A stretch of DNA of 64,000 bases from Entomortierella parvispora E1425 (taxonomy: Eukaryota; Fungi; Mortierellomycota), in NCBI GenBank assembly GCA_020891255.1, contig BQFW01000003.1, forward strand, positions 372,001-436,000, in the 5' to 3' direction. Positions 39,740 to 49,232 of this stretch are shown one piece after another; position 1 is the first letter of the stretch, and the number at the start of each line of letters is the position of its first letter. Both the position numbers and the translations under genes were made by a program. The notes beneath the pieces were generated by a model. The model saw nothing but the letters and a program-made list of their open reading frames with translations, searched no databases and was not told where the DNA came from.

Positions 39740-42700
39740 ATGTCGGCCATCGGGACCACTAGAGTGTTTCTCGAGGTAGAAAGGCAGAGGTTGACTATGG
39801 AACAACCTTTGAGAACGTCGTCACCGTCAGCAATGGCAAAGTCGTCGGCAAAGGTACCTCGTTCCCCACAGCAACAGCAGGCCTCCATACCTCAATTTCA
39901 ACAACCAAGTCCTCCACCATTATCTTTACCAAAGCTCACAACGATACCAAGGTCAGGGACGAGTTCAACGTCCTCGTCCACCACACCTTCCCCCACCTCT
40001 TCTACCAACAGTTTACAAAACCCATTGGATACAGTCTCTTTCACCTTCAGTTCACCGCTCTTTTATGACCAAAAGCTCTACATCTACCACAGTCTCTTGA
40101 CCTTGTATCAACAGGTGGGACGATCGATTCAACAACATCCGACGGTGCTCCTGGTGCTTCAGTACTCTGTTGCGGCCGTACATGGCTTTACGGTCTATCT
40201 GTTGTCAGTGATCCTCTCTGTGGCGCAATTGATCATGATTACGGCCACGATTGAGAACTTGGATTGGATCCAGTCTCATAAGCCCCTGATGTTGGAGTGG
40301 GACAGTCGTTTCCCAGGCTTTGTCTTCCCAGCCATCGACACCAGTTACTCAGACTCTGACGCAGAGGAATCTACAGAGGACAGGAGTCGCCGCCATGGCC
40401 AGGGCGCCCCTGTCTCCCGACAGTCTATCCGTGGCGACCGTTACTGGAGTGGAAAGGCTGTCTTGAAGAGTGGCGATGACTCGATGGATGACGGCTATTA
40501 CTCTGAGGAAAACCAGAAGAGAATCGCCATCCAACGTTCCATGAACTCCACCCTTCGACGGAGACTGGCCCGATACCAGCAGTGGGTCCCTTCGTTCTGG
40601 TCACTCGAGGAAGAGCAGGAGCAAGGGGATTCTTCGGAGCCCTCTCTGCAAGAGGGGGAAGAAGATCAGGAGGAGGATGAAGAAGACGCGCAGGACCGCT
40701 ACCTCCCCTCCCGGATTCGCCGTGCGTTGGTCCGGACCCTTTCCAGCAGTTTTGGACCAGCGGTGACAGCCTCGACGGCCAAAGGCAAAAGGGTGACTTT
40801 TAATGAGCAGGTATTGATCCTAGGTCGCAGGCGATCTAGTGAGGCCTCGTCTTCGCGTCGTTCTTCGCTCCATGCCATGACCATAACCCCCTGTTCAAGC
40901 ACCACCACTGCCGCCAACACCACTTGCCCTGGTGAATCGTCCTCTGCTGGGTCAGAGAAAGCAGCCCACCCATCTGCCACCTCTTCTTGTGCCTCCTCCG
41001 TTTCGGGCGTGTCCACTGCAACATCTTTGGGTTCTGTAGCAGATGAAAAAGCAGCAACATTCGCATCCGATTTTTCGCCCGCGGCGGCAGAGACTTCTTC
41101 GACTAGTGCGAGTAGTGCTGCGCCCATTCCGCTCTCATCCTCCATCGCACAGGAAAAACTTTGCGCCATGGCCAAGGAGGAAGCAGAGTACCAGCGCCGG
41201 TCCTCCTTGTCGGGCGAAGACTCCAATGGTTCAGGCACTTCCTCGCCCTTGTTCCAACCAGATCCTCACCAGCAAAAGCCAACGTCGGCCATTCCACCGC
41301 CCACCGTGTCCTCACCACCCTCGGTGTCGGCCCCAACCACGCCTGCCCTTGCCAATACCTCTTTGACTTCTGATTTGAAGCGGTCGACCTCCGTACCGAT
41401 GAAGATTGGTTCCTTTCTCCATCGTCATCCACAGCAGCTGCCTCTTCAAGCGACTGCTCGCCATTCATCCACCTTTTCGGACGCGAGCACAGTGGGTCAG
41501 AACCCCAGGGCGCTGCCTGTTCATTTGTCCTTGCCAATTCAGCCAGGAACGGGTCCAGGAGTAGTTTCCTTGGCTGCCATGGTCCCTACCCATCCACGCG
41601 AATCTAGCGAGCCGGTCTCGCCTCGAACTTCCTTCTCTCTCAGCACTCGTGCCCGACGCTCCTTATCTTTGGCCACGCCTCAGCGTCCCCTGAGCAGTAG
41701 CGAGGCCTCCATAAGGTCGAGCTCGGACGAACAAGGACCTCCTTCCTTGGGACGTCGGGGCTCGACCGGTGGATTGACTGGCTCTGGACTGAAGGGCAAG
41801 AATTTCATGTACCGGATCGTGCACCCTCAACGCTACAAGCGCGAGATGGAGCAGCAAGTTTCCGAACAGGAACGTCAGCGACTCTTGACATTGGCTCAGT
41901 TGCAGCGACGCCACATTCTTTCCACGGACGGGATCTCGTCCCCGGTGCGTGTCACGTCTGCCTCGGAATCCGCGGCGCTGCAAACGGTGTCTGTCAACAG
42001 TCCTGTGCTCTGTGGAGACGCTTATTACTATGCGACCTCGGCCGTGTATGTGGAAGGATTGGGAGCCGAGAACTCTATGATCTCGACCTCGATTGGGACC
42101 TCGTTCCCAGAAGAGTTGCAAAGGGGAAAGAGCAAAAAGAGTAAAAAGGTCCAACGACCGGCGTCGTATGACTTTGGATGCGATCGACCCATCGTTGGAG
42201 CGGCCACGGCCTTGCCGACCAATACGGAATACGGCTACGGATCCGAGAACGACACCAGCTCTAGTCGGGTGAGCGAGGCTTTGGAAAAAACCAGGAAGCA
42301 ATCATCTGGATTCTTGTTCAGACGCGATCCTTTCAACAAGAAGAGCGCCGACTCACCTTCAACCCCTCAAAGGGCGTCCTCCACCAGCCGGTTGCATCAG
42401 CTCTTTTCGAATCCTGGACAGAAGCAGACGCAGACGCAGTCGACTTCGTCCTTGCTGGCGATTCCTGGGTTCTCTTCTTCTGCAATGTGTGGGACCTCCT
42501 CCGCGTCTTCTTCCGATAGCGAGTCTCCTCGACCAACGCCCAGGTACTCTTCCTCGGCTGCGGCGGGTGCGCATCGGTTGTTGAACCGGGCCCGATCCAG
42601 CTCCAGGAACTTTACCAGTTTCACAGCCTTGGGCATGCCCGCCAACCCTCCCGGCCATACCGTCTCGGCGCCCACCACCCCGGCCTCTGCTGCCGCGACC

Positions 42701-43282
42701 CTGCCCATCTACAGCAACGATGTGCCACAGCAGCGACAGCGTCTACAGGACCGGGAAATGGAACACACTTCCTTTGCCGCCTTTGGTTTTCCCTCCCCAA
42801 CGACCTCCCCCGTCCATTCTGCCCCTGCCTCGCCCAGACACTCCACCAGCTCCATGCCCGGTGATTTTCTCCAGGGTCGGATCCAGGCCATGAGTGATTT
42901 TCATGCCAATGTGATTCGAAGACATCCCTTCTTGGAGGCCGATTACCTGTTGGAACAGGATCAGCATCGGTACCTGCAACAGCAGCGTCAGCAGCAGCAA
43001 CAGCAGCATCTGCCTCAACATCAGGAGGTGTTGGAAGATGATAGTCAAGGTCTCTTCTATCCTGCCGCTGCTGCTGCATCCGAGACCGAGGTCAAAGCGA
43101 GCCCCAATGCCAGTCGTGAGACCTTGATCAGCGAGAAGGGCTTGGCCTTGCCAATGTCCCCACCACCACCGGCATCCTTCACACCTGTCTCTGTCAGTCC
43201 TGCAAAAGTCGTGTCGGAAAAGTCGCCCAGTCGCGGTTTGAGTTTTATCCGCAAGCTCAGCTTGAAAAAGAACAAAAAGTAG
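39740..43282 (+). CDS. Large S/P-rich disordered protein with an N-terminal hydrophobic segment and a KRVTF motif; single ORF of 1180 aa, true start may be a downstream ATG
   Basis: 3.5-kb stop-free ORF with coding-like composition. Candidate membrane segment VLLVLQYSVAAVHGFTVYLLSVILSVAQLIMIT. Basic C-terminus RKLSLKKNKK. Confidence 0.7.
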   Translation: MSAIGTTRVFLEVERQRLTMEQPLRTSSPSAMAKSSAKVPRSPQQQQASIPQFQQPSPPPLSLPKLTTIPRSGTSSTSSSTTPSPTSSTNSLQNPLDTVSFTFSSPLFYDQKLYIYHSLLTLYQQVGRSIQQHPTVLLVLQYSVAAVHGFTVYLLSVILSVAQLIMITATIENLDWIQSHKPLMLEWDSRFPGFVFPAIDTSYSDSDAEESTEDRSRRHGQGAPVSRQSIRGDRYWSGKAVLKSGDDSMDDGYYSEENQKRIAIQRSMNSTLRRRLARYQQWVPSFWSLEEEQEQGDSSEPSLQEGEEDQEEDEEDAQDRYLPSRIRRALVRTLSSSFGPAVTASTAKGKRVTFNEQVLILGRRRSSEASSSRRSSLHAMTITPCSSTTTAANTTCPGESSSAGSEKAAHPSATSSCASSVSGVSTATSLGSVADEKAATFASDFSPAAAETSSTSASSAAPIPLSSSIAQEKLCAMAKEEAEYQRRSSLSGEDSNGSGTSSPLFQPDPHQQKPTSAIPPPTVSSPPSVSAPTTPALANTSLTSDLKRSTSVPMKIGSFLHRHPQQLPLQATARHSSTFSDASTVGQNPRALPVHLSLPIQPGTGPGVVSLAAMVPTHPRESSEPVSPRTSFSLSTRARRSLSLATPQRPLSSSEASIRSSSDEQGPPSLGRRGSTGGLTGSGLKGKNFMYRIVHPQRYKREMEQQVSEQERQRLLTLAQLQRRHILSTDGISSPVRVTSASESAALQTVSVNSPVLCGDAYYYATSAVYVEGLGAENSMISTSIGTSFPEELQRGKSKKSKKVQRPASYDFGCDRPIVGAATALPTNTEYGYGSENDTSSSRVSEALEKTRKQSSGFLFRRDPFNKKSADSPSTPQRASSTSRLHQLFSNPGQKQTQTQSTSSLLAIPGFSSSAMCGTSSASSSDSESPRPTPRYSSSAAAGAHRLLNRARSSSRNFTSFTALGMPANPPGHTVSAPTTPASAAATLPIYSNDVPQQRQRLQDREMEHTSFAAFGFPSPTTSPVHSAPASPRHSTSSMPGDFLQGRIQAMSDFHANVIRRHPFLEADYLLEQDQHRYLQQQRQQQQQQHLPQHQEVLEDDSQGLFYPAAAAASETEVKASPNASRETLISEKGLALPMSPPPPASFTPVSVSPAKVVSEKSPSRGLSFIRKLSLKKNKK

Positions 43283-43581: not shown

Positions 43582-46500
43582 CTATTCCAAGTCAATGGAA
43601 TAGGGGAGCAGCTTCAGGACCGCACGCGCCAAGTAAGCGTGGGTTCCTTCCTTGCCCTCCTGAGGCAAATCGTAGAACATACGACGGGCCAAGCGCTCAT
43701 GGTGCTCAAAGCCCACCGCGGCCAAAGATCCAACAGGGGCAGCAGAAACAATGGTAAACCCAGGAGCTCCGTTGACACCGGCCTGGCCACGTCCACCAGG
43801 TCCATTCACGACCCACTTCTTCCAGAACTTGTCCATTGCCTCTCTCATAATCATGGGCAGGTCAATAATCTCGGGTTGCACCTCCATGCCTGGGTTTTTG
43901 TCCTCAATCTTGGCAATCACCATCAAAGTCTCGACCGCAATCTGACGCTCAGCTGGATCCAAGATAACTCCCAAGAAATTTTCGACCGCAAGGGCAAAGT
44001 TGAACTCTTCGGGGGTCTTCTCAGAGACAATGGGGTCTCGGGGCAAGAAGTGGGATCCAATACGGAAACCGGCAGCTCTGGACAAGATTCTCCAGACACG
44101 AGGGTAGAATTTGCTGGGGACACGGTTCAAGGAGCCATCGTTCTTGCGACGGCGCAACCAGCGACCGGATGAGTTTGGCACAAATGCAGCAATGGCTGAA
44201 GGCGAAGGGAAGACATCGCCATCGTCGGCCTTGGCTTGGTAAAGGCTCAGGTCGATCGTCTTCTCCAAAACATCAGTGGGCCCATCCGTGAACGCCTTGT
44301 GGGCCTCAGCAGCTGTAGTACCTTCCTTGCCTATTCATAGACATGGACACAGACAAACAACTATTAGTAAATTTTGCAAAAACTTACTTTTTTTCTGTCC
44401 CTCCGTGTTGCTTACCCTTTTCGCCAATCATGCACCAAGAGTCACGGTACTTGAGGTCGTTAATACGCCCACTGCCGAGCTGCTTCAAGGCAGTACGGGC
44501 AGCAGGCGTCAAGTGCTCAAAGCAGTCATCCTTGCAAGCGCAGATGACAATCATGCCGGGCTGAAGCCAGTCGATCAGGCGAGCCAGATCGTCACTTTCA
44601 TCCTCTGAAATGTGAGTATCGAAAGACACAGCCTCGATCAAGACGCCCTGGACAGGGTCGACCACAACCATGTTGATACCGCGCGAAGAGACAGACATGG
44701 TACTTTCGTTGATCATAATCTTGGAAAAGTTGCCAGAGTGATATCCTCCGGACTGGACCTTGATGGTGAGTGTGGTCGATCCCTTGGCCATGTTGGGGAT
44801 AGGAAGGGCACCAACGGAGGCAGAGGGGCCGGATGAGGAAATGTTGGAGCTGACATCTCCACTTTCGCTCATCAACGAAATATTTCCGTATTGACGACGT
44901 CCGGAAATAGGGCTGAGGCGACCGGAAGACTGGTTACGAAGAAGAGTGTTGGTGGCGTTGGAGCTGAGAGTAGGTCCAGAGAGAACGGTTCCGAGCAGAG
45001 ACTTGAGCTCAAAGGGAGAAAGCTGCATCAAATGCTCAACAGCGTCAGTCTCATCGCAGCTGTTCAAACGAGAGATCTCCTCGCGGAGAGCAATGATCAG
45101 GAAATGGGTACGGAGTCGCATGATACCCTCAAACATATCGGGATCGGCGCGAATGAAGGATCCGAGGTAGATGAGAACCTCCTGTACAACAGGTCCCTCA
45201 CGAACATCGTCAAAGTTGTTGTCATAAATCATCCTGCTCAAGACATCGGGTCCAATGGGGCTGGTGATAAAGTGCTCTGTAGGACCAGAGCCAATGGTGA
45301 CCTGCTTTTGGCGAATGACCAAATCAGTAATGTTGATTGTAAGGGAGTTGACGACCTTGGTCAGCAATCCAGCAGCCTGACGGACAATCGACCAAAGTTT
45401 CAACTGCAGCGACTTGAAGTAAACCTCTTCCAAAAGAGTCTCGACTGTAGCCTCCAAGTTGTAGACGTAAAAGTCGGCTCCCTGGCACGAGAGAAGGTAT
45501 TGAAGAAGATCTATAAAGTGCATTGAGTGGTTAGTTATGGTTCGGTCGATATGATGACAAATGCCACCCCATAGCTACTGCCTGCACTTACCAATTTGAT
45601 CGTAGAGGTTGACGGAAATCGAGAGCATACTCATGGCTGCATCCATGCTGGATGGGTCGCCCAAAATCAGACCCAAGCTCTCCATACCATCGGCTGACTC
45701 TTCCTCCTCCTCACCAGTGGCCTCTGCAAGTGTGTCTGAAATCTCAAGGTTGGCCAAATCAGGGGTAAGGCTGGCACCTCCATTTTTGCGGTTGGTGCGA
45801 GGTTCCTCGTGGTCCTTGAGTTTGAAGGCCTTGACCTGTTCCTGCCTGGTGTTACGAGGAGTATAAGGCTCAGAGGCTTGGGAGGTCGCGGCAGGGGTCA
45901 TGGTCAGTGGAGAGCCAGGGAAAGTAGCCTCCAAAGGTGTCTGCACTTGCGATTGCGATCCAAAGTAGTTGTCGCCCTCTTGTTCACTGTTGACAGCAGG
46001 CGTAGTAAGGGAAGCGAGCGAGAATCCAGTTCCAAAGGTCGATGACTGGCGACGAATAGACCAGCGGTGGTGGCCAGGGGTTCTGCTTCCACCGGGGGTG
46101 GCAGCCTGAGTCTTCTTCTCGTTCAATCCAAGCTTTCTGGCAGTGCGGCCCTTGCGACGGTCAGCGGCACCACGAAGGATACCAAGCCAATCAATGTCCT
46201 TCTTGGTGACCAGGAAGTCGAGGGACTCAATGCAGGAGGTGTTGACCATCTCACTCAAACGTCCAAGGCGGACACGGACATTGTTGCACATGCCGTTGCG
46301 CAAGCTCATGAAGAAGTTGAGAAGGTTGCGCTTGTTGTCCTTCTGAGGCGTCGATCCAAGCGAGGCCTTTCTCCAGGTGGTGAGGCCAGCCTCAGACTGG
46401 GATGCAAAGCTGCGAGACCTTGACAATCCACCCAACATGGCATGGGTCAACAATACGGTCATAGTAGGACGACCTGGGCTTACCCAGTACTGGCGAACAA

Positions 46501-49232
46501 AAGCAAGCTCCTGCTCAAAGACAGAGATCAAGTAGTCGTTGTCGCTGGTGAGGTAGAACTCCTCGTTATCCATGAAATGAGGGGTGAAAGCATAGAGGTG
46601 ACCCTGGACACGGTAAAGACGCGAAGTTCCAAGAGATCCGACGGGGCGCTTAGGTCTTCCGCTGAGACCGAGCTTAGCGTTTTGTCCAAGAGCTCCGTAT
46701 ACCTCTTTGAGTCCCTGGGGGTGGCTGACAGTAATGGGGTGAACCTGGTCCATAGTTTGAGTTTCGAGTCCATACATGCTCAACATGCTCTGCAAGTTTG
46801 CATCCTCGGCCAAGAGTACGACCTGGACCACAGTATCATTGGCCTGAGTCTTGCGTGCGTTGAAGCGTCTTCCAAGAGGATCAACCTCGGCAACACTGAG
46901 CAAGTTCTCGTAGATCAAGTTTCCAAGGGTATGCAGAGAGTTTGCCCATACAAGAGGGAGGTTGTCGTTCGCCATGCGTGCCTGTGAGTGATTGTCTTTC
47001 TTTTCCGCCTCAACAAGATGATGAGGAACATAGTACAACTCTGGGATCAGTGGAATGTGCTCCGGCAATTTGCCTTCACCATTGCTTCCGGGGGTGGTGA
47101 ATCCAGGCGAGGTAGGCGTCTTCAAACCGCGTCCATCTTCGCTCTCAGACATCGAGTCTGAAAGGAACTGGCCAAAGTCGACCAGAGTGGCCGAATCAAT
47201 GATCAGAGGCTCCAATTTTGCTCGATACTCCTCGACTTGGTCTTCATTCTCATTGAACAATCCATCGAGGATAAAGTAGGTGAAGAACAAGGGCCACTCG
47301 CACTCAATGTCCTCAAAGATCTTCAGCTCCTGTGCGTCATAGTGTAGACGAGATGTATCTAGTTGTAGCAAAGAAGGATTAGCGATCGGAATCAGAATAT
47401 CGGCCCCTTGGGGGGGTTTTTTTTTGCCACAATGCTAGATCTGGACATACTCTCGAGAATAGTTTGATGTCCGTCACGCAAGAAGCGCTTGCATCCGTAT
47501 TTGCCTCCAAGCTTTTCAATGATTTCATTGCGAGTTTTCTCGACAAGTTTGGCATCCCCAACAGCGAAGGCGGGGAATCCAATAACGGACAAGAGAGCAG
47601 CGTCAATCTCCTTTGAGTTAGATTCTCTTGGCAAGGCCGAATGAAGAGTAGTGTAGTTGCGGGTGATCTCATCAGGAAGGACGTGAATTACCTACAGAAG
47701 AAATAAATACGGCGTTAGGACATGACGGAGGTTTTTTCTTAGTTTGGTATCTCCTGCATGGAAAGAGAGGTAGGCTGACTTACAGAGCTGGGTCCTCCAC
47801 GAGATCCAAACAAGTTGATCCCGTTGATCGCCTGGAGTGCAGCAACAGCCATACCAATGGAGGACGAGTTGAGCTCGGGTTCACCATGGTTGATCTTGTT
47901 GCCACGCTCCCAAATACCGTAATCAGGTGTGCGATAGGCGCGCTCAATATAAAAGACCAAATTTTGGATAAAGTCGACTTCATCCGTAGTGTAGATGATG
48001 AGGATTCCAGAGGCGGTCATCTGGGCAAGGGCCAGCAAGAAGATGGAGGTGGCATCGATCTGCAAATGTCCCCATTCCGAGTCACCAACTACAGTGTCTC
48101 CCGTTGCGGTGTTGTATTTGGCGTGCAGACAGTCGTTGATGCCCTGTGTCTTCTTGAACTGCTCAATCTTTGGTGCCTGACGCATCATGCAGAAAAGCAA
48201 TCCGCGCATCAGCTTGACGACAGAGTTTTCGAGCTCATCTGCAAAAAGAGAAATACGCGGAGAGGAGAAAGTCAGTCCGTGGCCAGATCAGACATTTTTT
48301 TCATGGACAATTGAGCACAACACCACACCACACCACACGACACGACACGACACGACACGACACGACACGACACGACACGACACGACACTACACCACCCGC
48401 CACCACGCTGAGGAACATGCCAATCAACAAACAAACAAACAAACCGTGCGTCCCTGCGTCACATCGGGATGCATGGCCGATTTTTGAATCTGATAAAAAA
48501 ATGGCTCTCCTTTTCTCCGTGATCACCGCGTGGAACAAGAAGTGACATAATGCAAAGATCGATGCCTCCTTCCCTCCTTTGGCGGTGACAACTCGAGCCC
48601 CAATGAAGACGGGCAGGTAGGTAAAAAAGCAAAAGAGTCCGAAATCTCCCAAACCATGACCGAAATCGAAAAAAGATAACAGCCGAGAGCAGGGTGGTCA
48701 TAGCATTCTGAGGCACGCCCTTATCAGCAGCGAATGACTTCCGCGCATTGATTCGCAAGGTTTGAACTCCCCCCAAGCACCGGCCAGAATCTCTCTGAGG
48801 CTAATTCTGCGTCTCTTCCACCGTTCCAGGCTTCGTGTCTCACGGGAAGACAGCTCCCCTCTTTTCTGTCCCCGACTCCTGTGGTGTCTGCAAGACCAAC
48901 GGGCACTTACAGGCGCGACCCTCGTCATCATCGACACGGCGGTACGCGAGAGCCAGACCGAATACAGCCATGATCGAATAGACATTATCACTGTATGAGG
49001 AGAGAGCATGAAGCATTGGTTAGCAACACGAAAGAAGGGCTCCCGTTCCAATCTGATCTATCTGGAGAGTAGCCTACCGAACCCAAGCATCGCGGTAATC
49101 GCCATGGGTCGTCACAGCCACCGAGGCAGGGATCAAGCCTGTAGTAGGATTCTGACGGTTGAGGATGACTGCATTGACAGAGCGATAGTAGTAGTCGAGT
49201 CTCTTCCGGACGTTTGCCTGTGAGTGGTACAT
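43582..49232 (-). CDS. Phosphorylase kinase alpha/beta regulatory subunit (GH15-like) with an ILEI-domain insertion, about 1513 aa; exons 49232-49078, 48990-48911, 48238-47784, 47691-47451, 47358-45592, 45510-44416, 44330-43582
   Basis: [16 protein letters not shown]|[91 protein letters not shown] and [15 protein letters not shown]. Exon lengths sum to 4542 nt, in frame. Confidence 0.93.
48321..48390 (+). repeat. Pentanucleotide microsatellite (CACCA)3(CACGA)10(CACTA) inside phosphorylase kinase intron 2
   Basis: Direct read. Confidence 0.92.

Follow-up and report, generated by a model that had tools for sequence, protein, structure and literature searches.

The 64,000-nucleotide stretch of the Entomortierella parvispora E1425 genome analysed here (assembly GCA_020891255.1, contig BQFW01000003.1, positions 372,001 to 436,000 of the forward strand; hereafter the window) carries on its minus strand a gene for a regulatory subunit of phosphorylase kinase (PhK) of the alpha/beta type, into which an ILEI domain of the FAM3 and POMGnT1-stem family is inserted between the helical domains D4 and D5. 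PhK serves in textbooks as the example of a protein kinase cascade; understanding of its large alpha and beta subunits is still poor, and it is a long-standing question why these subunits carry degenerate glycoside hydrolase domains and whether glycogen is sensed. A preliminary description of the window had placed an ILEI-type lectin fold at the position of the phosphorylated loop of the animal alpha subunit, had proposed that the kinase is gated by glycogen or another sugar or lipid ligand rather than only by PKA, and had regarded the fusion as undescribed.

The gene was assembled from seven exons, with splicing inferred by comparative evidence, into a reading of 1513 amino acids (aa) with zero internal stops. 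This model matches the annotated protein of Gryganskiella cystojenkinii (P0217) end to end at 90% identity, residues 1-1513 against 1-1509, and about 40 other Mortierellaceae proteins at 77-86% identity, which confirms the gene model and assigns the window to the Mortierellaceae. Pfam matches on the exons were Glyco_hydro_15 (PF00723), ILEI (PF15711) and KPBB_C (PF19292). A single uninterrupted open reading frame (ORF) of 379 aa (45523-44384, minus strand) runs from the D4-like block, which Pfam places at the end of the glucoamylase-like/PhK region, through a linker into the ILEI domain, and all of the peptide blocks from which the domain had originally been recognized lie in this one frame, which continues in exon 7, so that its assignment to the same gene and reading frame holds. 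The ILEI frame ends with ...IGEKG at a GTAAGC donor site, and the reading resumes at position 44330 after a short intron. The host PhK aligns from its first residues with annotated fungal orthologues, leaving no N-terminal extension for a signal peptide, and the ILEI domain lies internally, at residues 1149-1290 of 1513, a placement that differs from that of a stand-alone secreted FAM3 protein.

The ILEI domain itself is encoded by nucleotides 44764-44416 and 44330-44254, in good agreement with the interval of 44250-44790 in which it had first been noticed. A search with the hidden Markov model of the family (PF15711) gave a significant, essentially full-length match, which scored 88.2 bits where the family cut-off is 27 (E 5.2e-25) and covered model positions 1-89 of 90. 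When residues 1140-1264 were compared with all PDB sequences using phmmer, the matches were FAM3A (1.1e-10), the POMGnT1 stem (1.3e-10), TMEM2 (1.4e-8), FAM3B (2.8e-8) and FAM3C (2.8e-7), with no other fold family above noise. The orthologous 160-residue segment from Gryganskiella (P0217:1137-1296), modelled with AlphaFold2 (AF2) from a 74-sequence alignment, folded with a mean predicted local distance difference test score (pLDDT) of 94.5 and a predicted TM-score (pTM) of 0.90, and a Foldseek search of the PDB with this model returned 21 matches at E<=0.001, all of them to FAM3A/B/C, the POMGnT1 stem or TMEM2. TM-scores were 0.72-0.80 to 2yoq, 5ggj, 5lc2 and 7ecq, the root mean square deviation was 2.4 A over 157 columns for 5ggj_B, and the next match beyond the ILEI family had an E value of 0.13. 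The model includes the C-terminal strands (137-141 and 151-156 of the 160 residues) at high pLDDT, and G146, P147 and T148 of the segment are at least 90% conserved. As modelled, the domain is thus a complete, independently folding beta-beta-alpha module of the ILEI/FAM3 type, set in frame at the D4-D5 junction, and the family assignment in the preliminary description is borne out by profile, sequence and structure comparisons alike.

Constraint on this segment was measured against the corresponding Gryganskiella locus (L002), where the DNA is 78% identical across exon 6, the intron and exon 7. The ratio of nonsynonymous to synonymous change (dN/dS) was 0.052 for the ILEI domain (pN 0.063, pS 0.61), compared with 0.031 for the D4-like flank and 0.058 for the D5-like flank. 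The Gryganskiella intron occupies the identical position, yet it agrees at only 43 of 85 bases, in contrast to the conserved exons on either side. Judged by these codon-level comparisons, the ILEI segment is coding and under strong purifying selection.

The remainder of the protein follows the layout of a PhK regulatory subunit, with a PF00723 domain D1 and a PF19292 KPBB_C domain, and its D1, D2, D4 and D5 are collinear with the chains 8jfk_M and 8jfk_B. D1 was recognized on exon 3 (PF00723, E 7e-41); the same exon aligned with residues 76-226 of human alpha (E 3e-63), in which E185 of the WERG motif is conserved, and the corresponding acid, E189 of the motif GIWERG, is retained in the fungal subunit. 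Exon 5 aligned with residues 309-619 of human alpha and 346-672 of human beta. The D4-like flank, up to ...LLGTVLSG, aligned with PHKA1 781-967 and PHKB 743-917, and the D5-like flank, which also matches Pfam KPBB_C (E 3e-24), aligned with beta 915-1037 (E 7.5e-28) and alpha 1037-1140 (E 3.6e-16). Affinity to the two human subunits is mixed, since D1 (215 bits against alpha, 188 against beta), D2 and D4 are nearer to alpha and D5 (62 against alpha, 101 against beta) is nearer to beta, as judged by pairwise scores. An AF2 model of the C-terminal 615 residues (pTM 0.67) showed D4, ILEI and D5 to be confident, with a pLDDT above 90 for D4 and below 50 for the N-side linker (model residues 186-239). 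The helical part of this model matched both human PhK subunits, beta as 8jfl_B (E 5.7e-18) and alpha as 8z5m_A, and the ILEI part gave separate matches to POMGnT1 and FAM3.

These alignments also locate the insertion site. At the D4-D5 junction about 70-80 residues of human alpha (about 967-1040) are unaligned, and human beta has no loop. Because the flanks of the insert align with PHKA1 as far as residue 967 on one side and from about 1037-1050 on the other, the insert occupies the site of the human alpha multiphosphorylation segment, as had been suggested at the outset. In human alpha this segment contains the phosphorylated residues Ser972, 985, 1007, 1018, 1020, 1023, 1030 and 1042, is flexible and invisible in cryo-electron microscopy, adjoins a proposed calmodulin-binding stretch (1046-1086) and lies near the autoinhibitory domain of gamma (PMC11950179). 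D4 and D5 are homologous helical domains, and D5 of alpha holds the gamma autoinhibitory domain (PMC10978961). In the window an unstructured multiphosphorylation segment of the alpha type is not present at the D4-D5 junction, the site being taken up by linker, ILEI domain and linker. The fungal subunit also has no C-terminal CaaX motif; it ends in ...LLPYSIDLE (43585-43620, minus strand), with no cysteine in its last six residues. In the human enzyme C1220 of alpha and C1090 of beta are farnesylated, and the farnesyl groups lie in the interfaces between the two D5 beta domains and between D5 alpha and gamma (PMC10978961). The features of the gene are collected in Table 1.

Table 1 Features of the PhK regulatory subunit gene in the window (residue numbers refer to the 1513-aa protein)
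Feature	Position	Strand	Remarks
PhK alpha/beta-type regulatory subunit gene	43582-49232	minus	7 exons, 1513 aa, stop included
Exons 1 to 7	49232-49078, 48990-48911, 48238-47784, 47691-47451, 47358-45592, 45510-44416, 44330-43582	minus	exon 7 includes the stop
Glucoamylase-like D1, D2, D2-D3 loop and D3 (exons 1-5)	45592-49232	minus	Pfam and human PhK alignments
IRRQSS, candidate PKA-type site	46040-46057	minus	residues 745-750, D2-D3 loop
D4-like helical domain	44954-45508	minus	residues 901-1085; N-terminal flank of the insert, ends with a conserved 16-aa block
S/R-rich disordered N-side linker	44765-44953	minus	residues 1086-1148
Candidate basic-Ser phosphosite	44923-44894	minus	residues 1096-1105 (10 residues), disordered N-side linker
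ILEI domain, main part	44416-44764	minus	residues 1149-1265, exon 6; Pfam, PDB, AF2, Foldseek
Codon of R1176	44683-44681	minus	candidate sugar-contact triad, within ILEI, exon 6
Codon of D1227	44530-44528	minus	candidate sugar-contact triad, within ILEI, exon 6
Codon of R1255	44446-44444	minus	candidate sugar-contact triad, within ILEI, exon 6
Intron, 85 nt	44415-44331	minus	GTAAGC...CTAAT (branch-like)...AATAG acceptor; splits codon 1265 within ILEI
ILEI domain, C-terminal strands	44254-44330	minus	residues 1265-1290; conserved E..H...GPT motif
Short C-side linker	44170-44253	minus	residues 1291-1318; AF2 pLDDT 64-79, dN/dS 0.044
D5-like domain	43585-44169	minus	residues 1319-1513; its first 18 residues are homologous to the alpha region next to the proposed calmodulin-binding stretch

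Two further elements were seen at this locus. The 672-nt intron 2 of the PhK gene contains a (GACAC)10 microsatellite (48339-48388), which reads GTGTC on the gene strand. A 1180-aa ORF of Ser/Thr/Pro/Gln-rich low complexity (39740-43282, plus strand) converges with the 3' end of the PhK gene, about 300 nt separating the two stops.

The distribution of the ILEI-bearing PhK was surveyed by scanning 1.84 billion representative proteins with HMMER, using the 379-aa ORF as the query. In many of the proteins recovered a single alignment spans D4, linker and ILEI, and in every PhK-type match with an ILEI domain local domain mapping gave the order D4-like, ILEI, D5-like. Such proteins were found in Parasitella, Cunninghamella, Umbelopsis, Mortierella, Chytridium, Phlyctochytrium, Gonapodya, Spiromyces, Linderina, Ramicandelaber, Blastocladiella and Rozella. 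When the N-terminal 400 residues of the protein from Umbelopsis were used as the query of a separate word-index search, the precomputed domain set of PF15711, PF00723 and PF19292 was present in 117 of the best 120 fungal relatives, adding Endogonales, Zoopagomycota, many chytrid orders, Paraphysoderma, Sorochytrium and the aphelid Amoeboaphelidium. The phyla represented are Mucoromycota, Mortierellomycota, Zoopagomycota, Chytridiomycota, Blastocladiomycota, Aphelidiomycota and Rozellomycota. No ILEI domain was found in Corallochytrium, Ichthyophonus or the animal alpha subunits, and all of the best 120 relatives of the Corallochytrium protein, holozoan and animal, showed PF00723 and PF19292 only. 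Since the domain is carried by 117 of 120 fungal relatives and by none of the 120 holozoan and animal ones, the insertion is, on this sampling of fungi, holozoans and animals, a trait common to Fungi in the broad sense and unseen in Holozoa. The combination of a GH15-like domain with ILEI in one protein, for which a taxonomic survey had been proposed, is thus widespread among early-diverging fungi. The insertion had a single origin, before Rozella, aphelids, chytrids, Blastocladiomycota, Zoopagomycota and Mucoromycota diverged, with only sporadic losses since.

Two of the apparent losses were rejected on inspection. The proteins of Batrachochytrium JAM81 (P0034) and Phycomyces (P0038) come from old or partial gene models, and newer models from the same genera carry PF15711. 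Genuine genomic deletions, independent of one another and with the PhK otherwise intact, were found in two chytrids, Synchytrium microbalum and Gorgonomyces haynaldii (P0028 and P0275). In S. microbalum (L001/L004) only about 200 nt separate the exons that flank the ILEI site, and tblastn of this locus with the protein of S. endobioticum found nothing that matched residues 973-1208. In G. haynaldii (L003) a continuous ORF jumps from the end of D4 to the last ILEI strand (GPTEVI...), indicating an in-frame deletion that removed the body of the domain. These two species are natural controls for the ILEI-bearing enzyme. The kinase and EF-hand genes directly upstream of PhK alpha/beta in S. microbalum (L004 2608-5625) were considered as a cluster encoding the gamma and delta subunits, and this candidate was rejected, as the EF-hand gene encodes a CIB-like protein and PDB searches with the kinase ORFs brought no match at cut-offs of 1e-10 and 1e-20.

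A maximum-likelihood tree of 47 sequences resolved two paralogous clades within the Mortierellaceae (support in the Shimodaira-Hasegawa-like approximate likelihood ratio test, SH-aLRT, of 92 and 99), both of them ILEI-bearing, and the window PhK grouped with Gryganskiella copy 1. The duplication of PhK alpha/beta within this family (P0188-P0242) occurred after Actinomortierella had split off. Two PhK alpha/beta copies are also listed for many Mucorales and for Chytridium lagenaria.

The POMGnT1 stem contacts beta-linked N-acetylglucosamine (GlcNAc) through Arg129, Asp179 and Arg207; FAM3C, FAM3A and C. elegans Fam3L2, which keep this triad, bind GlcNAc resin in vitro, while C. elegans Fam3L1, which is without Asp179 and Arg207, does not (PMC9802357). 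In a HMMER alignment of the window domain to 5ggj, these residues correspond to R1176 (in SRGIN), D1227 (in CKDD) and R1255 (in YRDSW), and their equivalents are retained in 148, 154 and 155, respectively, of 156 fungal PhK ILEI domains. When all of the collected ILEI copies were placed in one profile alignment, the full R-D-R triad was present in 153 of 168 PhK copies (91%), the exceptions being mostly gaps, compared with 149 of 258 non-PhK copies (58%). This difference argues that the triad is not simply a structural constant of the fold. Elsewhere the ILEI domain was found alongside alpha-amylase (P0072), GH72, CBM_4_9, GNT-I, CEMIP and phage tail fibres. In P0072 (1861 aa) the alpha-amylase catalytic domain is followed by three ILEI domains, P0060 combines Peptidase_C25 and CARDB with two, and P0008 combines Acyl_transf_3 with six ILEI repeats.

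Given the retention of the triad in the PhK copies and the company that ILEI keeps elsewhere with carbohydrate-active and receptor-binding modules, we favour a role for the domain as a carbohydrate-binding module that tethers PhK to a glycan or acts as a gate next to D5, although our confidence in this role is evenly balanced. According to this proposal, the domain would retain the ligand site of its sugar-binding relatives and, held by a disordered, S/R-rich linker of about 60 aa on its N side and one of about 28 aa on its C side, would dock the kinase on a glycan or report the state of that glycan, with glycogen as the obvious candidate and a GlcNAc-type sugar as the alternative. The domain would lie next to the D5 surface, the one that anchors the gamma autoinhibitory domain in human PhK, and next to the proposed calmodulin-binding stretch, so that occupancy by a ligand could tune the activity or localisation of the kinase where animals phosphorylate that loop. 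Three points weigh against this proposal. To our knowledge, the ligands known for the ILEI fold are beta-GlcNAc, mannose and sugars in a hyaluronan context, and they include no alpha-1,4-glucan. The triad is among the most conserved positions of the family and could be partly structural. Finally, two chytrids keep an otherwise intact PhK without ILEI, and the domain is therefore not indispensable.

A stronger form of the carbohydrate-binding proposal, which we put forward tentatively and consider unlikely as it stands, is that the PhK regulatory subunit of early-diverging fungi is a direct carbohydrate sensor in which glycan binding controls the release of the gamma autoinhibitory domain from D5. 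The glycan sensed might then be the outer chains of glycogen or a beta-GlcNAc signal (O-GlcNAc or metabolites of the chitin pathway), and the ancestral fungal switch at the D4-D5 loop would be ligand occupancy, as multisite phosphorylation is in animals.

Control by phosphorylation does not appear to have been given up. A motif of the form R[RK]x[ST] occurs in the D2-D3 loop of 58 of 73 diverse fungal orthologues, compared with 14.9 ± 3.6 in shuffled sequences, mostly 40-50 residues past the last D2 block; in the window it is represented by IRRQSS. The 'LDFL' block at residue 672 of human beta aligns with residue 694 of the window protein, and Ser701 of human beta, in the D2-D3 loop, is a PKA site (PMC11950179). 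IRRQSS is positionally equivalent to the loop around human Ser701 and is a candidate PKA-type site. Control of the PKA type thus probably persists through the conserved motif and, since this motif shares its loop with the human beta site, the ILEI domain probably adds an input rather than replacing phosphorylation. The N-side linker, which ranges from 32 to 110 aa among orthologues, also carries basic-Ser motifs, which are lineage-specific: GRLSPxSGRR is conserved within the Mortierellaceae, and RRxS variants occur in Mucorales. The enrichment is modest and inflated by shared ancestry, both for RRxS (10 of 66 sequences, 3.5 ± 1.8 in shuffles) and for R[LIVM]S (16 of 66, 6.2 ± 2.4 in shuffles). 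The original statement that the kinase is gated by a ligand rather than only by PKA must accordingly be qualified; a ligand may act in addition, while the D2-D3 motif and the linker motifs speak for continued phosphorylation.

Of the alternatives to a carbohydrate-binding role, the one that survives best, although we think it improbable, is that ILEI serves as a protein-protein or oligomerisation module and not as a lectin. The domain may contact the gamma autoinhibitory domain or calmodulin, and it could compensate for the absence here of the CaaX-farnesyl contacts by which the beta4 core and the alpha-gamma interface are stabilised in the human enzyme. This is consistent with the lack of a CaaX motif in a fungal subunit whose human counterparts place their farnesyl groups in the D5 interfaces (PMC10978961), with the position of the insert next to D5, and with the Foldseek match to the FAM3C dimer 5lc4. 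However, FAM3C dimerises by disulfide chemistry as a secreted protein, the near-invariant residues of the PhK ILEI domains are those of the sugar-contact triad, which is lost in many other ILEI copies, and two species manage without the domain altogether.

Considerably less probable is that ILEI is a tolerated passenger that got into a permissive surface loop at an early stage of fungal evolution and is kept mainly since misfolding or deletion would harm its host, with neither a ligand nor a regulatory function. The site is a hotspot of length and splicing variation in animals, according to the title of a reference cited in PMC11950179, linker lengths vary greatly among the orthologues, and two clean natural deletions exist. 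Against this, the domain has been kept across all early-diverging fungal phyla, at a dN/dS of 0.05, with surface-type ligand residues that are near-invariant and more so than in other ILEI copies, and decay or loss would be expected far more often than in the 2-3 of about 120 relatives in which it was seen. That the fusion is an artefact of annotation or reading, the ILEI segment being intronic, spliced out or part of another gene, has a negligible chance of being correct: one uninterrupted ORF joins the D4-like block, linker and ILEI, codons are under purifying selection where an intron would be unconstrained, more than 100 independently annotated orthologues show the identical order of parts, and AF2 folds D4, ILEI and D5 from one chain.

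A full-text search of one literature library found no paper on the ILEI-PhK architecture, and in this sense the fusion is undescribed, as first claimed. Its novelty needs to be narrowed in another respect, as ILEI-PhK is the common, standard form that PhK alpha/beta takes among early-diverging fungi, and more than 100 public protein records already show it through machine annotation. What is described here is a new, undescribed variant of a known complex and not a new kind of system. The fungi that have retained PhK have apparently always had a lectin-type fold at the loop that animals made into a phosphorylation hub, and the comparison of the D4-D5 loop in the two lineages is a natural experiment on what this loop regulates. 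If the direct sensor proposal were true, the FAM3/ILEI fold would have its first function in the cytosol and the classic glycogenolysis cascade would have a new input, and a cytosolic ILEI domain may also shed light on what the FAM3 proteins do biochemically, which is still obscure. The system lends itself to testing, since the domain is of small size and modelled with confidence, candidate residues for ligand contact are at hand, and nature provides two species without the domain for comparison.

Among known systems, the animal PhK subunits PHKA1/2 and PHKB (PDB 8JFK, 8JFL, 8Z5M-T) share with the fungal protein the five-domain layout, the WERG acid, collinearity over the whole length and a basic-Ser motif in the D2-D3 loop, comparable to beta Ser701. 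They differ at the D4-D5 junction, which in animal alpha holds about 80 aa of unstructured phospho-segment and in animal beta is empty, whereas the fungal subunit has an insert of about 235 aa with a folded ILEI domain and has no CaaX motif. The microbial multi-domain proteins P0072, P0060 and P0008 contain the closest non-PhK ILEI sequences in the library of 1.8 billion proteins, at 30-37% identity, and use ILEI as an accessory to enzymes that act on polysaccharides or surfaces. Their copies are tandem terminal repeats, probably extracellular, many without the R-D-R triad, and none is inserted in a kinase subunit. FAM3A/B/C/D (PANDER, ILEI; PDB 2YOP, 2YOQ, 5LC2-4, 7ECQ) share PF15711 and the fold (TM-score 0.74-0.80), but they are small, stand-alone, secreted and confined to animals, while the fungal domain is embedded in a cytosolic protein of 1513 aa. 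The POMGnT1 stem (PDB 5GGJ and related entries) resembles the fungal domain in its fold (TM-score 0.77-0.80; 25% identity), in its three matched GlcNAc-contact residues and in being an accessory module on an enzyme of a carbohydrate pathway, as ILEI is in fungal PhK. It is lumenal, in the Golgi, is placed N-terminal to a GT13 catalytic domain and has an O-mannosyl glycan as its ligand, whereas its fungal counterpart is cytosolic and sits inside the regulatory subunit of a kinase.

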